Shown here one piece after another: positions 198 through 64,000 of a stretch of 64,000 nt of DNA. The position numbers were made by a program, and so were the translations under genes. The notes under the pieces are model-generated. The model made no database searches. It was not told the DNA's origin and saw only the letters and a list, made by a program, of their open reading frames with translations. Origin of the DNA: Monocercomonoides exilis PA203 (lineage: Eukaryota > Protista > Preaxostyla); the NCBI GenBank assembly GCA_001643675.2, contig LSRY02000026.1, positions 1,255,189 to 1,319,188 on the forward strand, read 5' to 3'. Position 1 is the stretch's first letter, and the number at the start of each line of letters is the position of its first letter.

Positions 198-1910
198 TCA
201 ATAATAATACTTTTTCAACGTTAATTTCAAATAAAACTCAAGGGAAAACAACGATTTTTGTTTCATTTCAATATTTTTCAAAAATATTTTATGATATACA
301 GACAATAAGTTATATTTTTTATTCTCTTTCATTTTTTTTATTAAAAAGGTGAATGATTGAAAAATAGAAAAAAGAAAAGAAAAAAACCAATTTCTTTGTT
401 CCAAAAGAAGCCTTAAAGGACTTGGCGTAATTCTTTTCGCCTTTTCTGGTTCTGATGAACGTGGTGTTGAAGGAAAAGGAGATGAAGAAGATGCAGAAGA
501 AGGTTGGATTGATTTCCACTGACCTGGTAAATACCAGGCCATAGAATTATCATCTTCTTCATAATCATTTTCTTCCAAATCAATACTTTTCGTTTCATTT
601 CTATCTTTATCTTCTTTTTCTTCTTTTTCTTCGATTTTTCGCTTTTCTTTCTTTTCTTCTTCACATTTCTTTTTTAGTGCGCCTTCCTTTTCATTCTGTG
701 AAATATCTGAATAAAAAAAATGAGAAAATATAATGGTTGAAAGAGTTATCAAAAAAATCAAATAAAAGATTATGAATATAAATATGGGTAAAGAAATAAA
801 TAACAAACTGTCTATTTGTGCATGTAAAGTAGTTATTGTGGGTGTAATTAACAAGCTCGGATTCAATCTATTTTTCAATTTTATTCGATATCTCTCATTC
901 GCTATTTGTCTTGCTTTTTGTTTTAGTGAATGCTCCGTCCACAAGTTGTCCAAAATACGCTGATTAGCTTCCCCATCTGCCCTGGTCAACGGATTTCGTA
1001 ATATATGAAAATCTGTCAAACAACAAGCCACACAGAAATAATCTCCAACCCTTTCAACTTCAAATGGCCATTGTCTTCGAAAAACTGAAAAGAGGATCTT
1101 CAGACGACCGAAAAAACGTTCCACGATGACTCGATGAGTCTCTAGCTCTAGCATTCCCTCTATTTTTGTAATGATAGCAGCCAACTCAAGTCTCATACCC
1201 ACAATAGCTGAGTAAGCCGATATTTCTTCCTTTCCAAATTGATTCAATTATTGAGGATAGTGATTTTCGAAGAGAGTGAAGTCATGAGAAGAGCTAAAGT
1301 TAAATGTGCAGATGGAACTCCTTGTCTTTACTTTGAGATAGACTTCAACATCTGCTTTCACACAATATGTGTGATGTTTCCCGCTAAAAAACTTCTTCCC
1401 GAAGTCTAATCTACCTCCAGGTCTGTTGATGGGAATGATTGTGCCGTCCAAAACAATTCCAACCTCCTTCATCACTTCAATCCTGTCAGGGCGAAATGTC
1501 AAAAACATATCTGCTAATGGAGCTCTGATATGAGAAACAATACTGTGAAGAAGTCGGACAAGAGCGTTTTAAGTTTCATAGAAAAGTGAGGATAATAAAA
1601 GTGTGAGTGTTGTTGAACCGTGATGAAGAAAAGTTAGCAGCAAGAATAACTGTTCATCAAAATTATTGATTGCTTTTTGTTTCCCTCGACGATGAGGAAC
1701 TTCCATTTGAAGAATGTGAATAAGAATATCAAATTCTTCTTTTGTGAATCCAGTGAGTCGAAAAAAAGAAGAAACCGGTTCATCAAAAAAGTCACAAGCT
1801 TTTTTGATGATGGAAATTTTTTCTTTCTTTTGAAGTGATTCATTCCGTAGTGGAATAATATTTCTCCTCTCCACACTCTTCAAAACGTCCAAAAAATTTA
1901 AATGTGACAT
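198..1910 (-). pseudogene. PIF/Harbinger-like (DDE_Tnp_4/IS5-type) transposase, copy H1, disrupted
   Basis: ATG at 1910 (MSHLNFLDVLKSVERRN). Fragments 1569-1949, 1248-1508 and 198-1247 carry GIVLDGT, FSGKHHTYCVK, SSHD and RVIVERFFGRLK, with stops/frameshifts. Predicted 102-nt phase-1 intron 808..707; tail exon has WYLPGQWKS and SPLRLLL. 3' end approximate. Confidence 0.85.
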
Positions 1911-4900
1911 TGTATAAAAAAAGAACAACTTACGTTTGATCAAAACCAAATATTGAAAATTTGCTATTGTCGATCATGATTCCAATTTTTGTGAACAAGT
2001 TTTTTATAATCAAATCAAACAATTCCACTTCAATTCAGTTTTCAAATCAAATTATTGAATGAAATAACATCATGTTAATTCCTTTGAGCAAAATTTAATT
2101 GGAATGTCAATTTTGAAGAAACAACATCTAAGTGAGAAACAAAACAATGAAGCGGATTATACGGGTTAATAAACTTTTTTAGTTCAAAAGAAACAAATCT
2201 TTATCTCAATCTGAACTTTCTTTTATTTAATCAGATTTTAAAATAAAATGGATTTTAATATCTGTTCCCAGGCATCATAGATATTACAACAGAAAGTTTT
2301 GTGATCTCTCAATTATTTCAAAAAACGTTCCCATTTTTTTCAAATTATTGAACACTAAAAGTCAATAAAAAGTTCATAATTTTTTATTAAAAATACATGG
2401 AATTTGTGATATTTTGCACCAAATCTTGATTATTTCTAAGTTGACAGCGTGATGGAATGCTCAGAATGTGGTTAGGGTTACATGAAATGTATTTCAATCA
2501 ATTAACCTTGATTTATTCTTTAAAATTGAGCTTCATTATATTCAGTTAAAATTATATGCAATCACTTTATTTTTATCGCAGCTTTATGTTTCAATATCCG
2601 ATTGTGATTGTTTACGATGTCGCTTTTCACAGAAAAAAACCACAAATTAATCAATTAATTATGGGTCAATATCACCATTTATTTAAATCCTTCAAAATAG
2701 TACTTTTTTCATTTATTAGAACAATTTTGATCATTGAAACACATAATTAAAACTAATTTCAACATAATTTTGAAAAATCTAAAAAAATTGAATAATTCGA
2801 ACAAAAAGTTGATTTTTCAATGGAAAATGAACCCGTTAATTAGAAAAATATGTGAATATATCTACATATTTGGCTCTGTTTATATATGGGTAATCATTTT
2901 TGTGATCATCCTTTTTTTCGGGGTAAGTTTATGATTATGAAAAAACAGTTTTCAAACATCAAAAATGCTTTCAGGCATCATGAATAATATCAATCATCAA
3001 CTTTCAAGACTACAATTATAATAAAAAAATGGTTTTTTTTAATGATTATTATTGGATTACCATTATAAAAAACGTAACTTGTTTGATATTTGTCTTTTTT
3101 GATGAAAAACAACTTTTACGGTTCGCATATATTGCATGAATGTTTATGATCTATTATGATGATGTTGCGCTATCCAATAGAAATGCAATCATTTCAATTT
3201 GGAATAATTTTGTCAAATGTTACTGTTTTGTATAATCGTGAACAAAAATGAAAAACAAAATCACTTTATTGTTTGTTTCAAATATGCAACAACACTATCC
3301 AATATTGCATCTAACTTTGCAATAAATTGAGTGTAAGTTGTTTAATATCTAATAATTCTCTTATTTAACCGAATATTATTGTTGTTATAAAAGTTTCATT
3401 GAATTCCATATATTTCTCGTTTTCATTTTTTCTTTTCTTTAAAAATGGCATTTTATTCTTCACAGTTATTATCGATTCGCAGTTAAAAAATGTTAATAAT
3501 GTTTTTTAAAAATATAATCTGTCTGTATTTCTAAGTCCAAAAGAAAAATTGTAACAATATTGAATTTGAGACTCATTTTATATAATAAATTAATTGCAAA
3601 CAGTTCTTTTCAAAGCGAGACATTTTGAGATAATTTTTCTCCATAAACAGAAAAAATAAAGATCTCCTTCGGATTGCATTTCTTTTTCTTTTCTTTTATC
3701 TCTCACTCTCTCTTTTTTTCTTCTCCTTTTTTTCTTCAGCGCCTTCTTTGGCCTTCTCTTCTTTTCAGTCTTTCGCTTCTTTCTTATGTTTCTCTTCTGG
3801 CTTTCCTTGCTTATCTTTTTCTTTTCCATCATCTGGGCTATTTCCTAAAATTCCTTATCTTTTTTCTCTTCTCTCTTCCCTCTTCCTCTTCTCTTCATTT
3901 AATTTTTCTGTTTTCTCTTTCTCTCTCTCTTTTCCAGCCGCTCCACAAAATTTCCTTGATGCACCTCCAGAAGCATTAATAATGATGATATTGAGTGCAG
4001 ATCCTGCCAAAACGGCAGTTCAAGCCTCATTTCTTCTTTTTCACTTTCTCTCCCTGCCCCTCTTTCATCCCTTCTTCAATGGTTTCCATGAATCATCACA
4101 GAAGGAAGTGGTGCATGTGGTGTGCTCATCTGCACCTGGAAAATGAATAGTTCTGGTGGCAGAAGGCCAAGAAGAGTTTGTTGAAAATTTTATTGTTTTC
4201 TATTTTTGGAGAAAAGAAGGAAGAGATATTGTATCTTCGTTGGCAGGGCAGAGGAAGTGAATTTGCGCGATGAGAGCGGCTTGAATAGCTGAGATGTCAC
4301 TCAGAAGATGAGATAGTGAAATTGCATATTCTGAAATGAGTCAAAAAAATTCATGGATGAGAAAGAAGAAGAAGAAGAAGAAGAAAAGTGAAAACAACAA
4401 ATATATAAGTTGTTTCATGAAAGCACAAAATTACTAATTAAAAAAATATATATTCTGACCCTTCAGTACAAATATATAAAATAAAAAGTTTCGAAAATCA
4501 CACTAAACAACTCCAAAAAATGCTCATATGACAAGTCATACATATTTCACATTTCTGTTCATCTGTTTTTGCCATTTCTCCTCTTAAATCCAGCCATTAT
4601 GAGAATTATGTGGAAACCGAAAAGTCAATCATATTTACAGAAAACTTTTGATGATGTTTATTCTAGATGACCTCAAATTTGAAGCATCAGCAGAAGAAAA
4701 AGGAGAAGAAGAAGATATTGGATATGCCTGAGAAGTTTTACTGTTCGGGGAGCTCATAAAATGTGGCAGCTTATCGTTCTGCACAAACTCTTTGCTCTTC
4801 TTGTTCTCCTTCTTCAAAATCCTCTTTTTCTCTTCTATGCGTCTCCTCAACTCTGATTTCTAATTCAACTTCTCAGTCATCTTCTCGCCTGTCTTTTCTC

Positions 4901-7487: not shown

Positions 7488-9444
7488 AAAAAACGTCATT
7501 CGTTTCAATATAAAATTCAACAAAAGCAAAATTACTCATAAATAAAACCAGAACTTTAAAAACAAATTGTATCCAATTTTTTCCTATCATTTAATAGTTT
7601 TCTTGTAGCATTCCCTATTTCAAACATTTCTGTTTTGCGAGAATATTTTTTTGAGGATTTTATCATCCTTTCATCTCTTATGCTTTTTTCAAGGAAGTTC
7701 ATTAACTCTTTTCCTCGGGAATCTTGTGGTGAACACACAGATCTGAAAATTTGATTACCTCGTTTCTCATAGAACAAATACGTCTTTATGGACTTCGCTT
7801 CAATTTTCCTCCATCGTATTTTATTTCCAGAAGAGTGCCTGAGTTTATAAAGAAATGAAGAAAATAAAAACAAAATTTTCATAATTGTGTCACACTTGAC
7901 AAAATATCGCGTTGTCTTTTGATAACTATCCGAGTTGTTATGGTGGGAATCATATGAGTCATCTGTATGGTCTTTCAGAAATTTTATAAGTTCATCAATA
8001 TTATTAAGTGAAGGTCCATTGGACAAGTTATTTTTAACACAGTTTGTCAGATTCCCGAATTCTCCGTCACATTCACTTTTTCCATGTTTACACAGAAAAA
8101 TGAAAGAGTTGTTCGTTTGCCTCTGACGGGAGAAGAGTTATCAGAAAGGAGAAAATGCATAAGCTGGGAATTCCGAAAGTGTGGCCCTGTATCACATATA
8201 AAATGAAGAGTTTGCTTGTCTTTAACGATTTCATCTTCCAAAACTTGTTTCAGACATTCAATGGTGAAACGGTAGTCGTGAGATAGAGCGTTTGAGAAGA
8301 AGTTAAAAATGTGCTTTTCTTTGTCTCCTTTCTTGTTAACAATGTAAACAATTACACAAAAATGTGTGATTTCCTCTTTTTCGTAATAATCTCGGCTAAT
8401 TTGGTTTTTGCAAATAGGAAGCGTCCAATTCTCTTTAAAGTCGAACAAAACCAACGCTTCCGAAAATGAAATGTTCTTTTTGATTTGATGGAAGTGCTGA
8501 CGTTGATTTGACGCCAGAAAACGATGCTTTTCAATAAGTCTTATTGTTTGTTGCTCTTGATCGTTCAATGTTTGTGATTTTGTTTTAAGATATTCTTCTT
8601 TTTTCTTCAGATGATTGAACAATTCACATAAGTTGCACAAGTCAGTTCGCCTGGAAGCCCTTTTAAGGTGTTTTGTCTTTTTGTAGAAAGAACTTTTTGA
8701 CATTTTAATATTCGTAGTTTCCATTAACTTTCTGAATAGCTGCGCTTTTGTTGTATTGATGATACGAACTTTTTGTTTTTTAATATGTGAATAAGAATTG
8801 TTTGGAGAACCATGAAAGAATGGATTATTGACGTTTGCATTTTGTAAATCTTGATGTCGATAATTGTGAAGGGTTGAAAAGTTTTGATTAGGATTTGTTG
8901 ATCTGTTTTTTGTTTCACTCAATTGGCTGGATGAAATCATTTCTGGAAAGAGAGATTGTTTTCCATTTGGTTTTGTAGATGCGGTTGAATTATGAATGAG
9001 ATGATTATTAATTGTTGTATTATTTGTTTCACAGTCTTTTGAGTTCGTTTGATAATTGCAATTAGAAGAAAATTCGTTAGAAAAAGGAAGAAATGAAGTG
9101 TCTATTTCAGATGTTATAGAACATCCGGAAGGTCGATTTGACAAATCAAATAAGGTCGATTTTTTGTGGTGATTTTCTGACGAAGAATGAACATTAGTAA
9201 TTTCATCATCATATATTATTGAAGGTGAAGTGGAATGATGTGGATTTGTTGTATTAGGATGAAGTGAATAAGAAGGATCTTGTAATAAACCATCACAATT
9301 AATGCAAACCGAACGAACATTTGTTTTCCTCTGATTCACTAGTGAAATATTATTTGAAAACGAACATTTTTGATGTGATAGTCCCAATTGAAACAAATTT
9401 GGTGAAGAAATATCGGAAACAGGAATGCATCCATGATTCTCCTG

Positions 9445-48810: not shown

Positions 48811-49557
48811 TTTCTATCACTTTTTTCTTTTTTAACTTTTTGTATATTCTTCATTTGATCAGAACTATTTGTCTTTTTGTAATATCTTTTGAAACACTTT
48901 GATCTGAGATTTTGCACATAAATGTATGTTATTGCAAAATCTCAGATCAGGGGAATCATTTCGTCAGAAACGTGAAAGCTTTGTTTAATTCTGAAAAAAA
49001 GATTAATTTTAATTTTAATTTTTAAATGACAGACAAATGATTTTTTAACTTGTCAAATCACAGAGGAATAGTTTTTTCTTCAATCATCTCTTGCTTGCTG
49101 ACAAAATACTCAATTTACATATTTAAATAAGATCATAATAGGAAGAGAGATTGGCAAAAATGTATAGCAAGAAACAGAAATATTCATTTTACAAATTTGC
49201 AAACAGGTTTGTTTTATCATAATATTTCATCCCGTAAGCAAAGTTTGATAACAGCTAAAATACTCAGATCAAAAATAACTGACAATTGTTTTTGAAAAGA
49301 TCACACAAAAAATCTGATTAATCAGAATTGATAAATTTTAATCAAATAAGATTGATTAGAACTTGATTAATTTGACTGCATCTTAATGACATTAGATCGG
49401 TCAACATCCAATAAGATCGATCTAATGTTATTAAGATGCAGTCAAATTGGATGTGACTCAGTCACATCCGATGTTTTCAATTCTGGGTTTCATGATCACT
49501 TTAAAAATATGTTTTTTATGGGTCATTTCACTTGCTTGTTTCTCTTTTTTTCACAAA

Positions 49558-51343
49558 ATGTCACAATCAACTTTTTTTAAGACATATTAGAGAGAGTGGA
49601 AAAGAGAAATACTATCACTGCACCAGTGCACATCGCTCCTTCACCTGCAAAAAAATCCCTCATCGAATCTGCTTGCAAATGGGTGATTATTTTTGAAATC
49701 ATATCTTTTTTCGGGGTGTTGATTTTTCAATGACTGAAAGTTTTTCGAAAAAGGTTTTTGCTTCAAATAAGAAAAAGCATGATAACTGTTTTTTAAAACA
49801 AATGGTTTTTCCGAATCAAGGATTAAAATGCATTCAATAAGCCTTTTTTCTTTTCAATTCGTTTTTATTGATATTTAAGAAATATATTTGCTCCGAAATT
49901 TTTGAATGAAAAAATATGATTTCAAAAATAATCACCCAAATATATGAAAGTTGATAAAACTCATGCATTTTTCCGACTCACTGGATTTGTTCGTTTTGAA
50001 TTTGATTTGCTCTATCAGTTATTAAGCAAAGAAATCCCTTTTCATCGGGAAAAAAAAAAACAATTGAAAAATTTGAGGATCAACTCTTTTTTCTTTTGAA
50101 TTTTTGCATCTTGGATCAACATCCTTCACTCATTTTCTCGTTTCTTCTTTTTATGAAACACAAAATTCAAACAATTAAATTGCTTCATAGCATTGTTCAA
50201 AATATAAAAGTCAATCTGATCGATTTGTTTATCACATTTCGACCAGATAGATTAGATGATATGAGAGATGTGGGTTTTGTGGTTGACTGCACAGTTCTTA
50301 CAACCAACAGACCAGCTGGAAGCTTGCAGTTTGGAACAAAATTCTACAGCGGGAAGCATCATATCTACTGCGTAAAGGCTGAAGTTGGTGTAAACCCGCG
50401 CACCGGAACAGCCAGCACTGTCAGTTCCATTCACACCGGCTCAACACACGACTTTTCTATCTTCAAGGAGCATTTCCCACAATTTAAGGCGCAGCTTGGA
50501 GGGTCAAAGGTGTTTGCGGACTCGGCATACATCGGGGCGAGGGCTGATTTGGATGCATATATTACGAAACCTGTCGGAACTCCTCAGCTGGCATCGCGGC
50601 GAGTCATAGTCGAGCGTTATTTTGGTCGTTTGAAGACTCTCTTCGCTGTCTTTCGCCACAATTGGTCATTTCAGGTCGAAAAGATTGCTGACTACTTCAT
50701 TGTTACATGCGCACTGACAAACTTCCATATCCTTCACAACCCATTAACTGGACTTTACTGCAAAGCCAATCAGAGGTTCATCAATGAACTGTACCTAATT
50801 ACAACAAGAAAAATAGAAGCAAGGAGACTTGTCAACGATCGATATCGGGCTAAACTTAAGAATAGACTCAATCCAGAGGCCTCTCCAACTTCTAGAATTT
50901 CAGTTCTGCTTGCAGAAGTAGCTGGCGTGATTTTTTATTTTTTACCCATATTATTCTTTATAACGTTTAATTTCTTCTTTTTCATATTTCAATAACCATA
51001 ACTATCTTTTTCAGGTGATTCTGATGACCAACAAACCCAAAATAGTGAAAAAGAAGAGAAAGAAGAAGAAAAAGAAGAAAAGGAAAAGAAAAAGAAAATT
51101 TCTATTGAAGAAAAAGAAAAAAGAAATGAAATTATTATGTTGAATAGTTAAAATGATGAAATTGAAGATGAAAGAAATAATGTTGTTGGCACATGGTTCA
51201 TTCCGAACCAATGGAAAAGTCTTCGCCTTCTTCAACAATCTTCTTCTTCAACTTTTCCTTCTTCGTCATGTTCATTATTTGATGAAAAAAGAAAAAGAGT
51301 AAGTGAATCACCTTTACAATCACTTTTAGCCAACAAAAAATGA
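49558..51343 (+). pseudogene. Harbinger-like transposase H3, interrupted by a MITE and frameshifts
   Basis: MSQSTF..ILERVEKRN, GFVVDCT, YSGKHHIYCVK, VFADSAY, RVIVERYFGRLK; intron about 50925-51014; tail WFIPNQWKS ... SPLQSLL. Confidence 0.9.
49681..49937. mobile_element. GGG-terminus MITE, 24-bp perfect TIR, AAAT TSD
   Basis: AAAT|GGGTGATTATTTTTGAAATCATAT ... ATATGATTTCAAAAATAATCACCC|AAAT. Removal restores the local H3 frame (ACKYMKVDKTHAFFRLTGF). Confidence 0.92.
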
Positions 51344-51404
51344 GTTTTTTCTTATTTTTTTATATAAACATTCACCTTCATCACCTTTTTTGATACGCAC
51401 AATA

Positions 51405-51853
51405 CATTCTAAACCGGATATAATCACATCAGTTTTTGCTCAACTTTTTGTGACTATATCTGATTGTGATTACACACGATGAGCTTTACACAGAAAAAAA
51501 TAAAATTTACTTTTTGAAATAATTAATTTTGGGTCGATTTTTTTATTTATGGAAATTCTACACAAATACACTTTTTTCACTTGCTTGAACAAATTTTTTC
51601 ATAAATACACATTATTTTGACTTATTTGAGCACATTTTAGAAAAAGCGAAAAATTAAAATTTTTGATCAAAAAATCGATTTTTCATTGAAAAAATCACCC
51701 ATAATGATAAAAAATGTGATTATATATTTTCATCCCTGTGATTATATGCTATTGAAAATGAATGAAATATTGGTCTGAAATGTTGGTGCATCGAAAAATG
51801 TGACTATAAACGAATGTGATTATATTCGACGTGATTATATCCGGTTTAGACTG
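51405..51853. mobile_element. Tigger/pogo-like MITE with CA(G/T)TCTAAACCGGATATAATCAC TIRs
   Basis: 23-bp TIR with 1 mismatch; TA on the left flank (TT on the right); multiple internal GTGATTATA repeats. Confidence 0.8.
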
Positions 51854-52420
51854 TTCACTTTTGATGTTTCAGAAAATATTTGTTTTTGTTGTTATTAAAC
51901 ATACTTAATAAAAATTTGAAATTTTGATTGAAAATAGTTATTAACTCTTTAAAGCTTAAAATAAAAAATGAAAATATGAAATGAATGAAAATGAACATAG
52001 AAACAAACACATATATATGCAAATATTTAAAAATACATTCAAATATACTATTCCTGTAGTTTAATTTGTTTAAAAGTTGGTAATCCTTGCAAAAAATACA
52101 TAAAAACTTGATATAAATACATAGTATGAAAAATAGATAAAAGTGTAAAAACTGATCAAAAATGGCTTTTATAATATCTATTAAACACACATACCAAATA
52201 TTGAAACACAACTAAAAACATTGGCGAAGAAATCAACAAAACAAAAAAAGTTAAGATCACAACACTCAAAACAAATTTAATTGATAATTCCGAAGCTGAA
52301 AACATGTGAGATTGAGGAAATTCGATTAAAATTAGTTAAATTCGACAAACCAGACTAAAATCGATTTGATTGAGTCACATTTTCGCGACCCAGTCAAATC
52401 AATCAAGTTCTCTTATAATA

Positions 52421-54772
52421 GACCTTTGACGATTTTATGTATTCAATTTTCATAAGTCGATTCTTTTTCACAAAAGTTTTTTATAATACGAATTAGATTC
52501 AGAAAATACCGTATTGAATTTCTCACAACCAGTAAAACAAATGTTGGGAAAATGATCCTTCAAAAAAAACCTCAATTAATGGGTGGTATTGTTTATAACG
52601 CTTTTTATAAGTGAACATCATGTCTCAAATCAACATTGAAAGCATTCTTGAAAGTGTTGAAAAACGTAATGTTTTGCCGAAAGCTCTTCAAATCAAAACA
52701 GAAAAAGTTCAACGTTCCATCATTGAAATAGCTTGCGAAAAACTTGAAGATCCATCTCGCTCATTTTTTCGATTGTCAGGGTTTTCAAGAAATGAATTCG
52801 ATCTCTTGTTATCACTACTGCAAAAAGAATCTCCTCAGCACCGTGGAAGGGACAGAGCAATTAACACTTTGGAGGAGCATTTGTTTTTGCTACTGAATTT
52901 TTTGCATCATGGTTCCCCAACACTAACCTTTTCGATTGCTTCGCCTTTCTACGATTCTCAAAGTGCGACTAACAGATTGTTACATTCAATAACATCTTCT
53001 CTCAAACACCAATTGGCAGATTTATTTCTAACATTTCGCAAAGACAGGTTGGATGAAATGAAGGATGTTGGGATTGTGCTAGATTGCACTGTGATTCCTA
53101 TTTGCAGACCAGGAGGAAAACTGAAGGAAGGAAAGAAGTTCTATAGTGGAAAGCATCATTACTATTGCGTTAAAGTGGAAGTTGGAGTAAATCCAAGGAT
53201 GGGAACAGCGAGCACAATAAGCGAGGTTTACACAGGTTCAACACACGATTACAGCGTGTTTAAAGAGCACTATCCAAAGTTCCAGGACAAAATGGAAGGA
53301 TCGAAAATACTAGCAGATTCAGCTTATGTGGGTGCGAGACCAGAGCTGGGGGCTGTCATTAGCAAACCAGTTGGGACAAAGGAAATTTCATCAAAAAGGG
53401 TTATTGTTGAACGTTTTTTCGGAAGACTTAAGACATTATTCTCTGTCTTTCGTCATCCTTGGCCTTTCGATGTTGAAAAAATCGGAGAGTACTTTTTTGT
53501 TGCTTGTTGTCTCACTAATTATCACATTCTTCAAAACCCTCTCACAAAAAAAGACGAAGAAGCAAATCAACGATTTTTAGACAGTTTGGTTTACGATTAT
53601 TTACAGAAAAAAGAAGCAAAACGGATTGCTAATGAAAGATACAACACGAAAATCAAAAATAAATTGAATCCTGGAAATATGCCAGCACCCAGAATTTCTT
53701 CTCTCGGAACCCAAAGAGAAGGTTTACTAATTGAAATATTAACCATAACTTTGTTTTTTATTCAATTAAAACATTTTTTGAACATTCACATTAACCATAT
53801 TTTTTTTTGTTAATTTATAGGGCAAACACAGAATTTAGTCTCCATTGATCATGCCATAAGCAGAAGAGAAGAAGAAAGAGAACAGCTTGAGAGCCTAAGA
53901 GAAGAAGAAAGGGTTTGTTTATTGGAAAGAGAAAGAGAAAGAGAAATTCCAGATACACAATCAACTGATCACTCACTTGATTGGTTTCTCCCTGGGCAAT
54001 GGAAATCAACAAACATTTTCTTGCTATCTTCTTCTGCTCCTTTTCCAGTTTTTCCGACTTCCTCTTCATCTTCATCATCAGCTTCTGCATCTTCATCTTC
54101 AGCGACTCATAATACTCAAATTCTGAGTCCGCTTCAATTATTATTAAACCAGCGAAATGATTAATTGAAATATAAATACAAAGCTATTATGAATTTTTCA
54201 CTTCAATATCAACAATAATAAAAACACTTGGTTTTGTTCAAATTGTTTTTTTTTTTTTAATGAATGCTTTTTTTGAACAAAGATCATATAAAATTTTTAT
54301 GAAAATTTTCTTTCAACAGCTTTGTTGATTAGAAACTTTTTCTCATAAAAACAATCACTCCAATTTGAAATGATAAAAGTTATTAATATAAAAAAATGAA
54401 TTGTCATAAAAATATATTTCATTCACATTATTTTTAAAAATCGATCATGTTTGTTTAGACGAGTAACTTCCAAAACTGCACTTGTAATAATCATCTGAAC
54501 TAAAACGAATTTCAGTAATCAGTTCAAATAAAAACGAAACACACTTAATAACACCAATTCAAACTTATTGTTCGATTTATGAAAAAATTTCTACCAACAA
54601 CAACAAGAACAAAACACAAAAAAAGCGATCAAATCACTTCCATAATATGCTTATTCAAGATCAAAAAAAAGTTAGATCAAATACCGAATTGAGAACGTCA
54701 ACACTAAATAGAAAAATAGAAAACAAATTGATTGAATCAAAACGAAATTACCCGATAAATTCGTCAAAGGTC
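52421..54772 (+). mobile_element. Harbinger-like element H4 (intact, potentially autonomous)
   Basis: TA|GACCTTTGACGATTTTAT ... ATAAATTCGTCAAAGGTC|TA (18 bp, 1 mismatch). Confidence 0.9.
52620..54164 (+). CDS. PIF/Harbinger-like DDE transposase, two exons (52620-53721, 53821-54164)
   Basis: Uninterrupted ORF with FFRLSGF (HTH region), GIVLDCT, YSGKHHYYCVK, GSTHD, ILADSAY and RVIVERFFGRLK. The 99-nt GT..TAG phase-1 intron joins in frame to the exon containing ORF 53922-54164. Confidence 0.9.
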
Positions 54773-54779
54773 TAGTAAG

Positions 54780-54850
54780 GCATTAGTGGTATAGGGGCAG
54801 CATGCTAGCCTTCCAAGCTAGCGACCCGGGTTCAAGTCCCGGCTAATGCA
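54780..54850 (+). tRNA. tRNA-Gly(TCC)
   Basis: GCATTAG/CTAATGC acceptor stem, CTAGC-CT TCC AA-GCTAG anticodon arm, CCGGG-TTCAAGT-CCCGG T arm, TTTT downstream. Confidence 0.95.
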
Positions 54851-54898
54851 TATCTTTTCCCTTTTTAATTCATTATTGATAGATATTTGACGAATGCC

Positions 54899-55035
54899 TT
54901 TTATTTTATTTTATTTTATTTTATTTTATTTTATTTTATTTTATTTTATTTTATTTTATTTTATTTTATTTTATTTTATTTTATTTTATTTTATTTTATT
55001 TTATTTTATTTTATTTTATTTTATTTTATTTTATT
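54899..55035. repeat. (TTTTA)n microsatellite
   Basis: Direct observation; mirrored, slightly shorter, at about 59815-59943. Confidence 0.95.
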
Positions 55036-55049
55036 TTTTATTTTTTATT

Positions 55050-55099
55050 TTTTGTAACTGACAAAAGATTTTATAGCTTGTCATGTCGCAGAGGTATAT
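55050..55099. mobile_element. Solo hAT 3'-type end
   Basis: TTGTCATGTCGCAGAGGTATA matches the hAT TIR; a similar solo end lies at about 49025-49071. Confidence 0.65.
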
Positions 55100-58000
55100 G
55101 TGAAATATTTGTTTTTTAATTCATTAATTAATTTTGTATTTATTGAGTAAATTGAATAAAAATTTTATTTTGATTTTATTTCAAAAAGTTAACATTTTTA
55201 ATTGCATAACTTTAACATCAGCGGCACACACCAGATAAAGGGTCTCTTTGAAAAATGACGAAGATTTTTTCTGAAACTTGAAGACAAGAATTTGTATTTA
55301 AATAATTTTTAAGTTTTTTTTTACTCGAAATACAAAAGAGTTGTGATGCTTTTTAATAATACATAACAAACTGATCATTCACTTTCAAATAGTTTTAATT
55401 CAATTAACATTTTTGAGGTTATTATTCTGTGGAATAAGTACACTTCAGTGAAGTTACTGATGGCACTGACTTATGTGAAGGTCACTTTTCCAAACTACGG
55501 AAGATATTTGTAAACATTTTTTAATGAAGATTGTTTCATTTGAATATTTTAACAAAAGAAAATTATAGAAAAATGAAATTCATGATATTAGAAATCGAAA
55601 AAGCAGAAAATTTGTTTGAAGGAATTGAAAATTTGAAAGTTTAATAACTTCAATTAAGTGGGAAATCATTCATCTTCTTTTATCACTTTGGTGATACTAT
55701 TTGAAAAAACACTGTTGTATCATTTTAGAAGTGAATAAAAATGTTTCTTTTTAAATTCAAATTTCAGTTCCCTCTCACAGTAATCCACAAAAAAGAATAT
55801 TGTGTCATTGCCAAGAATCTATTTCCATTCAGAAAAAAATAAATGAAATGAAAACTGAAATGTGATGAAAATATAAGTCTATAACATATATTTATTTATT
55901 TTCATTTTTTTCATTTTCGTTTATATTTTTATTTGTATTATTCTTCTTGGAAAGTCACAAATGTTTAATTTTTCGATTAAATAAAAAATTCATATTTTGC
56001 TCAAATTTTTGTTCACACACATCAAACTTTACCAATACAAAATCCTTTTTTGATAATGCTATCACATTCATTCTTGTGCAGATTTGTGAGTGGGAACAGA
56101 TATTTAATCAAGATATGGATGATAATTTTTGAAAACATATTTATTCAATCAAAAATTTCTGTTCGAAATTTTCCCTTGAATATCAACAAAAGAACACTGA
56201 AAAATGAAATGGTCTATTAGTAGCATCTTCATCTTCATTTGTGCTAAAACATTTGTTTTTAAAGCAGTTGTGATAATTCAACAATTTGAACGCAAAATCT
56301 CTTCCCAATAGCAAACAACATTTGAAAAATAAACACCCAAAAAAAGTTATGATTTCATAAATTATCACCCATATAAAATTAAAAATTTTCAAAAGAATTA
56401 AACATTTGTAACTTTTCAAAAAGAATTACCGGCGAGATATTATCTGGTTGACAGAAGAGTTGAGAAAAATGGCAAATGCTAAATGTTGAGTTTTCTTTTT
56501 CTAATAACGGAAAAATTCTTTTTATTCGGCGAAGTTTCTTCTGTCATAATCTGTTTTAATCGAGATGAAAATAAAAAAATAATGGGTACGATCATTGAAA
56601 AATTTTGCATTTTTTCATATCTCTTCATATGTCTTCCAAACATTGATGAACTCTGTTGTTAACTTATTTAATTTTGTTGTTTATATATTTTAATTACACA
56701 AAATCATAAATTTTTGATTTTAAGTTATCAAATCACAAATGCTATTAAATGTGCTTTCTCTTATTATCTTCACCAGCAAACAGAGAGTTTTCGTCATAAA
56801 AGTGTGCAAACATATATCATATTGTTTGTTAAAGAAGAGGAAATGCGCAAATGTCAGTCATTTTTATTTTTAATTGTTTATGAAATATTTTTAACTTCAA
56901 TTTTTCACTGAAAGCGAACGGAATCTTAGTGTTGAATATTTAGAATCTTTTTTTAATAGGAAAAATTTATTTATTTGAAACTGTGTTTTCAAAAATTATT
57001 TTTATTAAAAAGAGGATGAATTGGATGATGATGTTTAAAAGATGAAAAACTAGAATTTGAACGAAAGAATTTTGAATATTGAAATAAAATGAAATAAAAT
57101 TCTAACGTTAAAAAAGCATATATCATAAATGGAAATACACAAGGAAATAATAATATTTAATAAAAATTCAAAAGAATCAAAACCAAACATCATTTTTATT
57201 CATTATCGAAAAAAGTTCAACATAATGAACAAAATACTGAAAGTGTGAGTTGTTTGTCGGAAAAAAACAATTGATTGTTTCGAAGTATTTTTCTTCGCTT
57301 CATGGAATACTGCGTTTATGTTATTGGACGCAACCTCTATCATTTTTTTCTTTTTATTCCTCACACCTGCATTTTCACCAACAAAAAACAAAAACAATCT
57401 CAGTGTGGCTAATGTGATACTGATGACATTGCATGAAATAATAATCCTTTCAATAAAGCCAAAATATTTCAGAACATATAAAACAAGTTTCTATCCTCAA
57501 GTTTCAAAAAAATTATCATTTTTCGAATTCGCCAACTTCACTCAACCTCAATACAGCCGTATTTTTATTTTTGAGATGCTAACCAAAGACATTTCTTGCT
57601 TGAAAATTTGCATGAATATTTATTCAAAGATAAATTTATCATTCGTTCAAAGAATTCAATTTTTGTTCATTCCTTTCTTTCTTTATCATTTTTCATTACA
57701 ACAACACTGTGCACAAAATATGAGAATAGACTTATCAATCAAAAATACTTTTTGCTTTAAAAATACATCAAATGTTTTTTAAATGATTAAAATTTTAATT
57801 TCAAAGGAATTATTATTCTATTATATAATAAAAAGCAATTTAAAAACACTCTTAAAAAATTAAGACAACTTAATCGTTTCAATACTCTTTGACTATTAAG
57901 GCGAAAGTTCAAAAATTTCAACACTAAGATTCCGTTCGCTTTCAGTGAAAAATTGAAGTTAAAAATATTTCATAAACAATTAAAAATAAAAATGACTGAC

Positions 58001-59991
58001 ATTTGCGCATTTCCTCTTCTTTAACAAACAATATGATATATGTTTGCACACTTTTATGACGAAAACTCTCTGTTTGCTGGTGAAGATAATAAGAGAAAGC
58101 ACATTTAATAGCATTTGTGATTTGATAACTTAAAATCAAAAATTTATGATTTTGTGTAATTAAAATATATAAACAACAAAATTAAATAAGTTAACAACAG
58201 AGTTCATCAATGTTTGGAAGACATATGAAGAGATATGAAAAAATGCAAAATTTTTCAATGATCGTACCCATTATTTTTTTATTTTCATCTCGATTAAAAC
58301 AGATTATGACAGAAGAAACTTCGCCGAATAAAAAGAATTTTTCCGTTATTAGAAAAAGAAAACTCAACATTTAGCATTTGCCATTTTTCTCAACTCTTCT
58401 GTCAACCAGATAATATCTCGCCGGTAATTCTTTTTGAAAAGTTACAAATGTTTAATTCTTTTGAAAATTTTTAATTTTATATGGGTGATAATTTATGAAA
58501 TCATAACTTTTTTTGGGTGTTTATTTTTCAAATGTTGTTTGCTATTGGGAAGAGATTTTGCGTTCAAATTGTTGAATTATCACAACTGCTTTAAAAACAA
58601 ATGTTTTAGCACAAATGAAGATGAAGATGCTACTAATAGACCATTTCATTTTTCAGTGTTCTTTTGTTGATATTCAAGGGAAAATTTCGAACAGAAATTT
58701 TTGATTGAATAAATATGTTTTCAAAAATTATCATCCATATCTTGATTAAATATCTGTTCCCACTCACAAATCTGCACAAGAATGAATGTGATAGCATTAT
58801 CAAAAAAGGATTTTGTATTGGTAAAGTTTGATGTGTGTGAACAAAAATTTGAGCAAAATATGAATTTTTTATTTAATCGAAAAATTAAACATTTGTGACT
58901 TTCCAAGAAGAATAATACAAATAAAAATATAAACGAAAATGAAAAAATGAAAATAAATAAATATATGTTATAGACTTATATTTTCATCACATTTCAGTTT
59001 TCATTTCATTTATTTTTTCTGAATGGAAATAGATTCTTGGCAATGACACAATATTCTTTTTTGTGGATTACTGTGAGAGGGAACTGAAATTTGAATTTAA
59101 AAAGAAACATTTTTATTCACTTCTAAAATGATACAACAGTGTTTTTTCAAATAGTATCACCAAAGTGATAAAAGAAGATGAATGATTTCCCACTTAATTG
59201 AAGTTATTAAACTTTCAAATTTTCAATTCCTTCAAACAAATTTTCTGCTTTTTCGATTTCTAATATCATGAATTTCATTTTTCTATAATTTTCTTTTGTT
59301 AAAATATTCAAATGAAACAATCTTCATTAAAAAATGTTTACAAATATCTTCCGTAGTTTGGAAAAGTGACCTTCACATAAGTCAGTGCCATCAGTAACTT
59401 CACTGAAGTGTACTTATTCCACAGAATAATAACCTCAAAAATGTTAATTGAATTAAAACTATTTGAAAGTGAATGATCAGTTTGTTATGTATTATTAAAA
59501 AGCATCACAACTCTTTTGTATTTCGAGTAAAAAAAAACTTAAAAATTATTTAAATACAAATTCTTGTCTTCAAGTTTCAGAAAAAATCTTCGTCATTTTT
59601 CAAAGAGACCCTTTATCTGGTGTGTGCCGCTGATGTTAAAGTTATGCAATTAAAAATGTTAACTTTTTTGAAATAAAATCAAAATAAAATTTTTATTCAA
59701 TTTACTCAATAAATACAAAATTAATTAATGAATTAAAAAACAAATATTTCACATATACCTCTGCGACATGACAAGCTATAAAATCTTTTGTCAGTTACAA
59801 AAAATAAAAAATAAAAAATAAAATAAAATAAAATAAAATAAAATAAAATAAAATAAAATAAAATAAAATAAAATAAAATAAAATAAAATAAAATAAAATA
59901 AAATAAAATAAAATAAAATAAAATAAAATAAAATAAAATAAAAGGCATTCGTCAAATATCTATCAATAATGAATTAAAAAGGGAAAAGATA

Positions 59992-60062
59992 TGCATTAGC
60001 CGGGACTTGAACCCGGGTCGCTAGCTTGGAAGGCTAGCATGCTGCCCCTATACCACTAATGC
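59992..60062 (-). tRNA. tRNA-Gly(TCC), mirror copy
   Basis: Exact reverse complement of 54780-54850. Confidence 0.93.
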
Positions 60063-60069
60063 CTTACTA

Positions 60070-62407
60070 GACCTTTGACGAATTTATCGGGTAATTTCGT
60101 TTTGATTCAATCAATTTGTTTTCTATTTTTCTATTTAGTGTTGACGTTCTCAATTCGGTATTTGATCTAACTTTTTTGATCTTGAATAAGCATATTATGG
60201 AAGTGATTTGATCGCTTTTTTGTGTTTTGTTCTTGTTGTTGTTGGTAGAAATTTTTTCATAAATCGAACAATAAGTTTGAATTGGTGTTATTAAGTGTGT
60301 TTCGTTTTTATTTGAACTGATTACTGAAATTCGTTTTAGTTCAGATGATTATTACAAGTGCAGTTTTGGAAGTTACTCGTCTAAACAAACATGATCGATT
60401 TTTAAAAATAATGTGAATGAAATATATTTTTATGACAATTCATTTTTTTATATTAATAACTTTTATCATTTCAAATTGGAGTGATTGTTTTTATGAGAAA
60501 AGTTTCTAATCAACAAAGCTGTTGAAAGAAAATTTTCATAAAAATTTTATATGATCTTTGTTCAAAAAAGCATTCATTAAAAAAAAAAAACAATTTGAAC
60601 AAAACCAAGTGTTTTTATTATTGTTGATATTGAAGTGAAAAATTCATAATAGCTTTGTATTTATATTTCAATTAATCATTTCGCTGGTTTAATAATAATT
60701 GAAGCGGACTCAGAATTTGAGTATTATGAGTCGCTGAAGATGAAGATGCAGAAGCTGATGATGAAGATGAAGAGGAAGTCGGAAAAACTGGAAAAGGAGC
60801 AGAAGAAGATAGCAAGAAAATGTTTGTTGATTTCCATTGCCCAGGGAGAAACCAATCAAGTGAGTGATCAGTTGATTGTGTATCTGGAATTTCTCTTTCT
60901 CTTTCTCTTTCCAATAAACAAACCCTTTCTTCTTCTCTTAGGCTCTCAAGCTGTTCTCTTTCTTCTTCTCTTCTGCTTATGGCATGATCAATGGAGACTA
61001 AATTCTGTGTTTGCCCTATAAATTAACAAAAAAAAATATGGTTAATGTGAATGTTCAAAAAATGTTTTAATTGAATAAAAAACAAAGTTATGGTTAATAT
61101 TTCAATTAGTAAACCTTCTCTTTGGGTTCCGAGAGAAGAAATTCTGGGTGCTGGCATATTTCCAGGATTCAATTTATTTTTGATTTTCGTGTTGTATCTT
61201 TCATTAGCAATCCGTTTTGCTTCTTTTTCTGTAAATAATCGTAAACCAAACTGTCTAAAAATCGTTGATTTGCTTCTTCGTCTTTTTTGTGAGAGGGTTT
61301 TGAAGAATGTGATAATTAGTGAGACAACAAGCAACAAAAAGTACTCTCCGATTTTTCAACATCGAAAGGCCAAGGATGACGAAAGACAGAGAATAATGTC
61401 TTAAGTCTTCCGAAAAAACGTTCAACAATAACCCTTTTGATGAAATTTCCTTTGTCCCAACTGGTTTGCTAATGACAGCCCCCAGCTCTGGTCTCGCACC
61501 CACATAAGCTGAATCTGCTAGTATTTTCGATCCTTCCATTTTGTCCTGGAACTTTGGATAGTGCTCTTTAAACACGCTGTAATCGTGTGTTGAACCTGTG
61601 TAAACCTCGCTTATTGTGCTCGCTGTTCCCATCCTTGGATTTACTCCAACTTCCACTTTAACGCAATAGTAATGATGCTTTCCACTATAGAACTTCTTTC
61701 CTTCCTTCAGTTTTCCTCCTGGTCTGCAAATAGGAATCACAGTGCAATCTAGCACAATCCCAACATCCTTCATTTCATCCAACCTGTCTTTGCGAAATGT
61801 TAGAAATAAATCTGCCAATTGGTGTTTGAGAGAAGATGTTATTGAATGTAACAATCTGTTAGTCGCACTTTGAGAATCGTAGAAAGGCGAAGCAATCGAA
61901 AAGGTTAGTGTTGGGGAACCATGATGCAAAAAATTCAGTAGCAAAAACAAATGCTCCTCCAAAGTGTTAATTGCTCTGTCCCTTCCACGGTGCTGAGGAG
62001 ATTCTTTTTGCAGTAGTGATAACAAGAGATCGAATTCATTTCTTGAAAACCCTGACAATCGAAAAAATGAGCGAGATGGATCTTCAAGTTTTTCGCAAGC
62101 TATTTCAATGATGGAACGTTGAACTTTTTCTGTTTTGATTTGAAGAGCTTTCGGCAAAACATTACGTTTTCAACACTTTCAAGAATGCTTTCAATGTTGA
62201 TTTGAGACATGATGTTCACTTATAAAAAGCGTTATAAACAATACCACCCATTAATTGAGGTTTTTTGAAGGATCATTTTCCCAACATTTGTTTTACTGGT
62301 TGTGAGAAATTCAATACGGTATTTTCTGAATCTAATTCGTATTATAAAAAACTTTTGTGAAAAAGAATCGACTTATGAAAATTGAATACATAAAATCGTC
62401 AAAGGTC
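60070..62407 (-). mobile_element. Mirror copy of element H4
   Basis: Same TIRs, reverse orientation. Confidence 0.88.
60672..62210 (-). pseudogene. Mirror copy of H4 transposase with homopolymer frameshifts
   Basis: Matches 52620-54164 except for 1-2 nt deletions in A/T runs, possibly sequencing errors. Confidence 0.8.
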
Positions 62408-62969
62408 TATTATAAGAGAACTTGATTGATTTGACTGGGTCGCGAAAATGTGACTCAATCAAATCGATTTTAGTCTGGTTTGTCGAATTTAACTAATTTT
62501 AATCGAATTTCCTCAATCTCACATGTTTTCAGCTTCGGAATTATCAATTAAATTTGTTTTGAGTGTTGTGATCTTAACTTTTTTGTTTTGTTGATTTCTT
62601 CGCCAATGTTTTTAGTTGTGTTTCAATATTTGGTATGTGTGTTTAATAGATATTATAAAAGCCATTTTGATCAGTTTTACACTTTTATCTATTTTTCATA
62701 CTATGTATTTATATCAAGTTTTTATGTATTTTTGCAAGGATTACCAACTTTTAAACAAATTAAACTACAGGAATAGTATATTTGAATGTATTTTTAAATA
62801 TTTGCATATATATGTGTTTGTTTCTATGTTCATTTTCATTCATTTCATATTTTCATTTTTATTTTAAGCTTTAAAGAGTTAATAACTATTTTCAATCAAA
62901 ATTTCAAATTTTTATTAAGTATGTTTAATAACAACAAAAACAAATATTTTCTGAAACATCAAAAGTGAA

Positions 62970-63413
62970 CAGTCTAAACCGGATATAATCACGTCGAATA
63001 TAATCACATTCGTTTATAGTCACATTTTCGATGCACCAACATTTCAGACCAATATTTCATTCATTTTCAATAGCATATAATCACAGGGATGAAAATATAT
63101 AATCACATTTTTATCATTATGGGTGATTTTTTCAATGAAAAATCGATTTTTGATCAAAAATTTTAATTTTCGCTTTTTCTAAAATGTGCTCAAATAAGTC
63201 AAAATAATGTGTATTTATGAAAAAATTTGTTCAAGCAAGTGAAAAAGTGTATTTGTGTAGAATTTCCATAAATAAAAAAATCGACCCAAAATTAATTATT
63301 TCAAAAAGTAAATTTTATTTTTTTCTGTGTAAAGCTCATCGTGTGTAATCACAATCAGATATAGTCACAAAAAGTTGAGCAAAAACTGATGTGATTATAT
63401 CCGGTTTAGAATG
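62970..63413. mobile_element. Mirror copy of the CAGT-type MITE
   Basis: Reverse complement of 51405-51853. Confidence 0.8.
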
Positions 63414-64000
63414 TATTGTGCGTATCAAAAAAGGTGATGAAGGTGAATGTTTATATAAAAAATAAGAAAAAACTCATTTTTGTTGGCTAAAAGTGATTGT
63501 AAAGGTGATTCACTTACTCTTTTTCTTTTCATCAAATAATGAACATGACGAAGAAGGAAAAGTTGAAGAAGAAGATTGTTGAAGAAGGCGAAGACTTTTC
63601 CATTGGTTCGGAATGAACCATGTGCCAACAACATTATTTCTTTCATCTTCAATTTCATCATTTTAACTATTCAACATAATAATTTCATTTCTTTTTCTTT
63701 TTCTTCAATAGAAATTTTCTTTTTCTTTTCCTTTTCTTCTTTTTCTTCTTCTTTCTCTTCTTTTTCACTATTTTGGGTTTGTTGGTCATCAGAATCACCT
63801 GAAAAGATAGTTATGGTTATTGAAATATGAAAAAGAAGAAATTAAACGTTATAAAGAATAATATGGGTAAAAAATAAAAAATCACGCCAGCTACTTCTGC
63901 AAGCAGAACTGAAATTCTAGAAGTTGGAGAGGCCTCTGGATTGAGTCTATTCTTAAGTTTAGCCCATTATCGATCGTTGACAAGTCTCCCCTTGCTTCTA

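Follow-up and report, generated by a model that had tools for sequence, protein, structure and literature searches.

Why should two DNA transposons lie head to tail, almost without a gap, directly in front of a tRNA gene? The question is raised by a 64,000-nucleotide stretch of the Monocercomonoides exilis PA203 genome (contig LSRY02000026.1, positions 1,255,189 to 1,319,188; hereafter the window, to which unlabelled coordinates refer), in which two PIF/Harbinger-type elements, H3 and H4, are followed by a gene for tRNA-Gly(UCC). A preliminary description of the window had proposed that such stacks grow by sequential insertion anchored at the tRNA gene, and the adjacency, spacing and orientation of related elements throughout the genome support this proposal. 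We consider it probable that the H3/H4 clade integrates in a narrow interval upstream of tRNA genes, and that its copies stack there in an ordered and self-regenerating manner.

The anatomy of the locus and its coordinates are as the preliminary description had given them; inverted repeats, the DDE_Tnp_4 domain, ARAGORN and Infernal agree. The tRNA-Gly(UCC) gene (54780-54850, plus strand) is called by ARAGORN and by Infernal/Rfam (58.5 bits), has a T-run a few bases downstream and is transcribed away from the H3/H4 stack. H4 (52421-54774, plus strand) is intact: its termini, GACC and GGTC at 52421-54772, belong to perfect terminal inverted repeats (TIRs; 12 of 12 nucleotides matching) and are followed by a two-nucleotide 3' extension, TA. 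H3 (49359-52412, plus strand) is decayed; its 20-nucleotide TIRs (49359-49378 and 52391-52410) match at 19 positions, and its core (49359-52410) is followed by the extension TC. The two elements are arranged head to tail with a gap of 10 bp (52411-52420), and a further 7 bp (54773-54779) separate H4 from the tRNA gene; with the extensions counted, the elements would end at 52412 and 54774, respectively. While the tandem arrangement described earlier stands, the pairing itself requires correction: because their proteins are only ~55% identical (55% in tblastn between the H3 remnant and H4 residues 64-374) and their TIRs differ, H3 and H4 represent two subfamilies and not a tandem duplicate.

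The same geometry recurs elsewhere in the genome. The nanopore assembly of M. exilis comprises 101 contigs and 82.3 Mbp (PMC8767320), and the search covered all 101 contigs, or 82,301,135 bases. The protein encoded by H4 exon 1 retrieved 104 loci genome-wide; since a query from another subfamily recovers essentially the same set, the list of transposase-bearing copies, about 105 in all, should be close to complete. Flanking DNA was analysed for the 30 best loci (short flanks) and for 17 of the 77 same-strand clusters (10-kb 3' flanks), a partial coverage that we count against our interpretation. ARAGORN, run with intron detection, places a tRNA at a fixed position relative to the element in 10 of these 30 loci and, as L006 is a duplicate of L001, nine of 29 independent loci abut a tRNA gene. 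The nine tRNAs belong to eight species (Gly, Thr, Asn, Phe, Tyr, Val, Leu(CAA) and, twice, Lys(UUU)); seven are confirmed by Infernal, and the two intron-bearing Lys(UUU) genes are called by ARAGORN alone. At all nine loci the tRNA points away from the element, the terminus of which lies 6-11 bp from the mature tRNA 5' end, and at eight of them it is the 3' end of the element that faces the tRNA (the exception being L013). The remaining resolved 3' ends all lie against another element's 5' end, ~2-10 bp away; six of the 30 loci could not be assigned, and L016 was ambiguous. Neighbouring copies within 6 kb of each other lie on the same strand in 27 of 29 pairs. Chance would be expected to yield ~0.03 adjacencies, compared with the nine observed (58 ends, at most 12 bp upstream of a tRNA, and 3339 tRNA-like candidates as a rough upper count).

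An equivalent bias is seen when tRNA genes serve as the starting point. Among 63 scored tRNA genes, which were picked independently of transposons, 17 have a Harbinger element within 20 kb; for 16 of these the nearest one lies upstream and for one it lies downstream, giving a ratio of roughly 13:1 once neighbouring tRNAs are merged. Likewise, all seven regions downstream of copies with at least 55% identity to H4 lead either to a tRNA (L032, L033, L039, L042) or to the next same-strand Harbinger copy in the direction of a tRNA (L038, L040, L041). An H family lying mostly far from genes transcribed by RNA polymerase III (Pol III), which the preliminary description had named as the outcome that should overturn its proposal, is not what we find for the H3/H4 lineages: nine of 29 loci abut a tRNA and the rest mostly abut transposon ends. 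It had also suggested scoring the flanks for 5S and U6 genes; an Rfam scan of 32 loci detected tRNA genes and no 5S, U6 or 7SL gene beside the elements.

Some of the flanking tRNA genes are unusual. The putative tRNA-Lys(UUU) genes of L020 (C62) and L030 (C23) contain an 8-nt intron, the label given to one of the two is 'Stop(tta)', and both score below the Infernal threshold. At L016 (C17), the Harbinger end is followed after 8 bp by a tRNA-like unit (oriented coordinates 3809-3900) that has motifs resembling A and B boxes as well as a T-run; this unit is called neither by ARAGORN at default settings nor by Infernal, and may be a decayed tRNA gene.

Association with tRNA genes is a property of particular lineages, and the genome thereby provides an internal control. 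Within 10 kb of eight of nine clusters with 48-53% identity to H4, neither a tRNA nor any other Rfam family is present, and the 3' termini of these lineages share the GGTC+TA end, yet run into unique, unrelated DNA. One such lineage is scattered over ~15 solitary loci, none of which is near a tRNA in the flanks examined, and has open frames of 588-592 codons that continue in frame across the intron. Three of its copies (C91:640783-642537, C13:450232-451998 and C31:887276-889039) are 96-100% identical, and 3' parts of the lineage are present in L047, L035, L045, L046 and L036. Because intact, near-identical and solitary copies persist away from tRNAs, insertion elsewhere must be tolerated in this genome; together with the lineage restriction of the association, this tolerance favours targeting encoded by the element over selective survival as the sole cause. 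The tRNA homing thus belongs to H3/H4-like lineages, the 48-53%-identical ones being mostly scattered.

How the elements stack becomes apparent from their target sites, for which several duplication models were compared on 24 elements with both flanks. An offset 3-bp model, in which the three nucleotides abutting the 5' GA.. terminus equal the three nucleotides that start two bases past the 3' ..TC terminus, is perfect in 15 of the 24 elements, including H3. The mirror-image offset model is perfect in eight, a 5-bp duplication (TANTA) in seven, and a 3-bp duplication abutting both ends in none; a duplication of TA was considered as well, and the offset 3-bp model fits best. All discriminating cases (L002, L008, L013, L019, L020, L022, L025 and H3) favour this model, from which it follows that the 3' end carries two extra bases, usually TA, and that insertion duplicates 3 bp. 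The duplicated triplets conform to NTA (mostly CTA, also ATA, GTA and TTA) and do not obey the TWA (TAA/TTA) rule of PIF/Harbinger elements. When the model is applied to the tRNA-Gly locus, H3 is bounded by TTA on its left (49356-49358) and TTA on its right (52413-52415), and H4 by ATA (52418-52420) and GTA (54775-54777); a TA (52416-52417) remains between the H3 and H4 duplications, and an AG (54778-54779) between the right duplication of H4 and the tRNA gene. Relative to tRNA-Gly, the insertion points are then -10 to -8 for H3 and -5 to -3 for H4. Within stacks, the modal junction TACTA is nearly invariant, which can be read as TA plus a shared CTA, because a newcomer re-enters the triplet restored, on the side of the tRNA, by the insertion before it.

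Harbinger elements are not the only transposons at such sites. The immediate neighbour of the tRNA in L032, L033 and L042 is a pogo-type transposon (DDE_1) located 4-8 bp away, and a pogo-type element sits between L004 and tRNA-Leu. The parallel drawn by the preliminary description with the tRNA-Lys gene of the window also holds, as the proximal element there is of the pogo type and ends 10 bp from the tRNA. L037 has a different composition: an open reading frame of the IS1595/Merlin type (7594-8673, plus strand; DDE_Tnp_IS1595, E=1e-19) is situated between tRNA-Phe and a Harbinger copy. Docking of a third superfamily at this tRNA was considered, but no TIR was found for the reading frame and the terminus located 9 bp from the tRNA resembles that of a Harbinger element; the frame may be nested in an older element.

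These observations suggest a scheme for how the stack could have been built. The 3-bp target would lie ~2-11 bp before the mature tRNA 5' end, that is, roughly at the expected Pol III start. H3 would have arrived first, inserting into a TTA located 8-10 bp upstream of tRNA-Gly(UCC), and H4 would have followed at ATA/GTA, 3-5 bp upstream, displacing H3 outward; the displaced H3 would then have decayed and gained two MITEs (miniature transposable elements with inverted repeats). As each integration would restore its trinucleotide on the tRNA side, the next copy could reuse the site, which would produce oriented, gap-free stacks. This order of events had been part of the preliminary description, and the decay of H3 and the insertion positions fit it; divergence from the nearest relative, however, is similar for both elements (92-94% identity for H3, to a sister copy in L026, and 96% across most of its length for H4). 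Regarding the guide, the transposase may be directed not by DNA sequence but by the Pol III pre-initiation complex, be it through TFIIIB/TFIIIC or a polymerase subunit. The flanking tRNAs belong to eight species with unrelated leaders, and the Pol III complex is therefore a more likely guide than sequence; by analogy with Ty3, we infer a tether to the Pol III machinery. On balance, we lean slightly towards the view that a clade of cut-and-paste transposases evolved Pol III complex-guided integration at a self-regenerating trinucleotide, and that the same habit arose independently in pogo.

Several points weigh against this interpretation. Active targeting is deduced from the pattern of standing insertions, and of the 63 tRNAs sampled, 46 lack a transposase-bearing Harbinger element within 20 kb. 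The duplication assigned to H4 itself matches at two of three positions only, whereas that of H3 (TTA) is perfect. It is solely the decay of H3 that speaks for the age order, and the opposite order has been noted at tRNA-Lys. For the long stack on C62, continuity to its tRNA is presumed. Finally, the conserved C-terminal tail of the transposase, which is an obvious candidate for a tether, is shared with a scattered lineage.

An account that dispenses with targeting would have the elements insert near-randomly at NTA or TA, with selection removing all copies except those upstream of tRNA genes. In a genome with 62.6% of its chromosome length coding (PMC8767320), such havens could well matter, and the presence of pogo in the same positions could reflect a shared permissive site. 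Selection alone, however, would not give a spacing of 6-11 bp, an orientation bias or the reuse of a trinucleotide, and the sister Harbinger lineages survive away from tRNAs as intact, near-identical and solitary copies; we hold this account to be unlikely.

Very unlikely, in our estimate, is that the stacks result from nesting directed by ends or sequence, with newcomers recognizing the terminus of a resident element or TA+CTA, and the tRNA being relevant for the first arrival or never. The near invariance of TACTA within stacks is compatible with this idea, as are the H4-family copies L002-L004, which are located between other elements with no adjoining tRNA, and the geometry of the tRNA-Gly locus would permit the reverse order, with H3 entering 5 bp upstream of an H4 already in place. 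Nesting does not explain, though, why nine independent stacks begin at tRNAs of eight species with equal spacing, or why the scattered lineage with an identical GGTC+TA terminus attracts no stacks. Regarding the internal copies, L003 and L004 are followed by the end of a non-Harbinger element, and the pogo-type element between L004 and tRNA-Leu could be a later arrival. That the arrangement at tRNA-Gly is a coincidence or an assembly artefact is hardly credible: the locus does lie less than 15 kb from the inferred contig end, close to a 6.1-kb inverted duplicate with the error profile of unpolished nanopore sequence, but the H3-H4-tRNA junctions fall in the well-polished proximal arm, the H4 frame is open, and identical geometry is found on many other contigs.

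H4 encodes a single protein, the transposase. Exon 1 of the transposase gene (52620-53721, plus strand) provides 367 codons without interruption (52620-53720), and its DDE_Tnp_4 domain at residues 154-300 (Pfam PF13359, E=7e-26) matches the complete 158-position profile. The catalytic D, D and E are likely those of the motifs VLDCT, LADSAY and VIVERFFGRLK. A GT-AG intron of 99 nt (53722-53820, plus strand), predicted by reading the sequence, separates exons that share a frame, and among copies the tail is conserved only in the frame of exon 2. This second exon (53821-54164, plus strand) encodes an acidic, serine-rich tail in which the family preserves the order W..P.QW.S, serine-rich stretch and PLQ.LL; these motifs look like short docking motifs. 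No Pfam family matches the tail or the N-terminal 153 residues. The tail was also considered as a sufficient targeting determinant and rejected, as a variant of it occurs in the scattered lineage. Beyond the transposase gene, H4 contains no other open reading frame of at least 80 amino acids, and hence no second protein of the Myb/MADF type, and the non-coding sequence left over amounts to only 199 bp plus 610 bp. On this reading, an H4-type element is a single spliced transposase gene with no second open reading frame.

H3 retains less of its gene. The transposase remnant (50012-50944, plus strand) still contains DDE_Tnp_4 (Pfam E=1.5e-19) but has lost ~63 N-terminal residues, and its tail contains a stop. 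At both ends, the terminal ~100-145 bp of H3 recur with ~90% identity at many other loci. MITE 1, in the 5' part of H3 (~49677-49941), has 30-nt inverted arms that are 97% complementary, and copies of it with 79-85% identity are present in L046, L044 and L035. MITE 2, in the 3' part (51407-51855), is missing from L026:1-1278, a sister copy that aligns through the site without a break; related copies occur in L036, L018 and L044. Both families, of ~265 bp and ~449 bp, recur inside or beside Harbinger copies on several contigs (L011, L018, L035, L036, L044 and L046). Distal to H3, what is left of the 3' subterminal region of an older Harbinger element (49278-49355, plus strand) is 79% identical to the corresponding part of an L014-type element. 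A further Harbinger copy in the window (747-1910, minus strand) is 85% identical to the L009 subfamily and has an open frame of 591 codons; its 3' end would fall past the left edge of the window. In L002, two inverted L008-type Harbinger 3' ends (oriented coordinates 1177-1236 and 3790-3849) flank an H4-family copy, whose protein is 96% identical to that of H4, and form a 60-nt inverted repeat around it.

The window closes with an inverted duplicate (57904-64000, minus strand) of positions 50814-56950, which is 99.2% identical over 6.1 kb, extends to the last base and contains the end of H3, H4, tRNA-Gly and 2.1 kb of downstream sequence. The arms are separated by a unique loop of 953 bp, and 31 of the 33 indels between them are located in homopolymers, nearly all of them missing from the distal arm. 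As the end of the window presumably is the end of the contig, the duplicate represents either a very recent palindromic (inverted) duplication or a nanopore artefact at the contig end. It includes the third tRNA of the window, a tRNA-Gly (59992-60062, minus strand) with an 'H4' of its own; because this gene lies within the duplicate, we have rejected it as an independent case and draw no support from it. A (TTTTA)n microsatellite (~54895-55051), which starts ~45 bp downstream of tRNA-Gly, differs by two units in length between the arms.

Targeting of tRNA genes is a textbook strategy for the survival of retrotransposons in compact genomes, and Ty1, Ty3 and TRE5-A find their sites via contacts of integrase or ORF1 with Pol III factors. 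Ty3, a member of the Metaviridae in Saccharomyces cerevisiae, lands, upstream of tRNA genes of many species, no more than a few bases from where Pol III starts, and its guide is the transcription complex, not the sequence (PMC5911963). H3 and H4 resemble Ty3 in their position upstream of many tRNA species; while Ty3 is a retrotransposon whose integrase is of the retroviral type, H3 and H4 are cut-and-paste elements with DDE_Tnp_4, a 3-bp duplication, a strong orientation bias and long head-to-tail stacks. A dependence of H3 and H4 on TFIIIB would be presumptive. Dictyostelium, which also has a compact protist genome, harbours the position-specific elements TRE5-A and DGLT-A upstream of tRNA genes (PMC5006619, PMC6101501, PMC9012585); both are retrotransposons, and TRE5-A targets sites ~50 bp upstream (PMC9012585). 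A narrow upstream interval shared by many tRNA species defines this class, and it is what we observe here, with nine loci, eight species, a spacing of 6-11 bp and 16:1 in favour of the upstream side.

DNA transposons with a preference for RNA genes have been described as well. Dada elements of fish and other animals reside in multicopy small-RNA genes, including tRNA genes (PMC8869645). They belong to a different superfamily, insert inside the RNA gene at a specific sequence that they recognize, and any given lineage keeps to a single RNA species or to a few, whereas H3 and H4 end upstream of tRNA genes of many species, and these genes remain intact. Pokey, a piggyBac element of Daphnia, is a cut-and-paste transposon with a multicopy RNA gene as its target (PMC3849761); this target is inside the 28S rDNA, the superfamily is again different, and there is no link to Pol III. 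In the literature that we searched, targeting upstream of tRNA genes was found for retrotransposons only, with Dada and Pokey as the DNA transposons in that context, and no account of a cut-and-paste DNA transposon that homes upstream of tRNA genes generally came to light. DNA transposons go unmentioned in a paper on convergent tRNA targeting, and the genome paper of M. exilis mentions neither tRNA nor Harbinger (PMC8767320). Within their own superfamily, the elements also stand apart. Canonical members (PIF, Ping/Pong and Harbinger) are characterized by DDE_Tnp_4, short TIRs and a 3-bp duplication (PMC2213677, PMC4482050), all of which recur in the elements studied here. However, canonical elements require a second protein of the Myb/MADF type, duplicate TWA and are dispersed, while H4 has room for a single spliced gene, its duplicated triplet is NTA (mostly CTA), its 3' end is extended by two nucleotides, and it belongs to a clade that homes to tRNA genes.

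If our interpretation is correct, it would constitute a new case of convergent evolution across transposon classes and place a 'safe harbour' strategy among simple DDE transposases. The existence of targeting and scattered sister lineages, ~45% apart in protein, would offer a natural comparison for finding the targeting determinant, and a small, single-protein transposase might be employed to place DNA at a predictable and harmless site. For the annotation of M. exilis, it accounts for the oriented transposon stacks that are found beside tRNA genes in the assembly.

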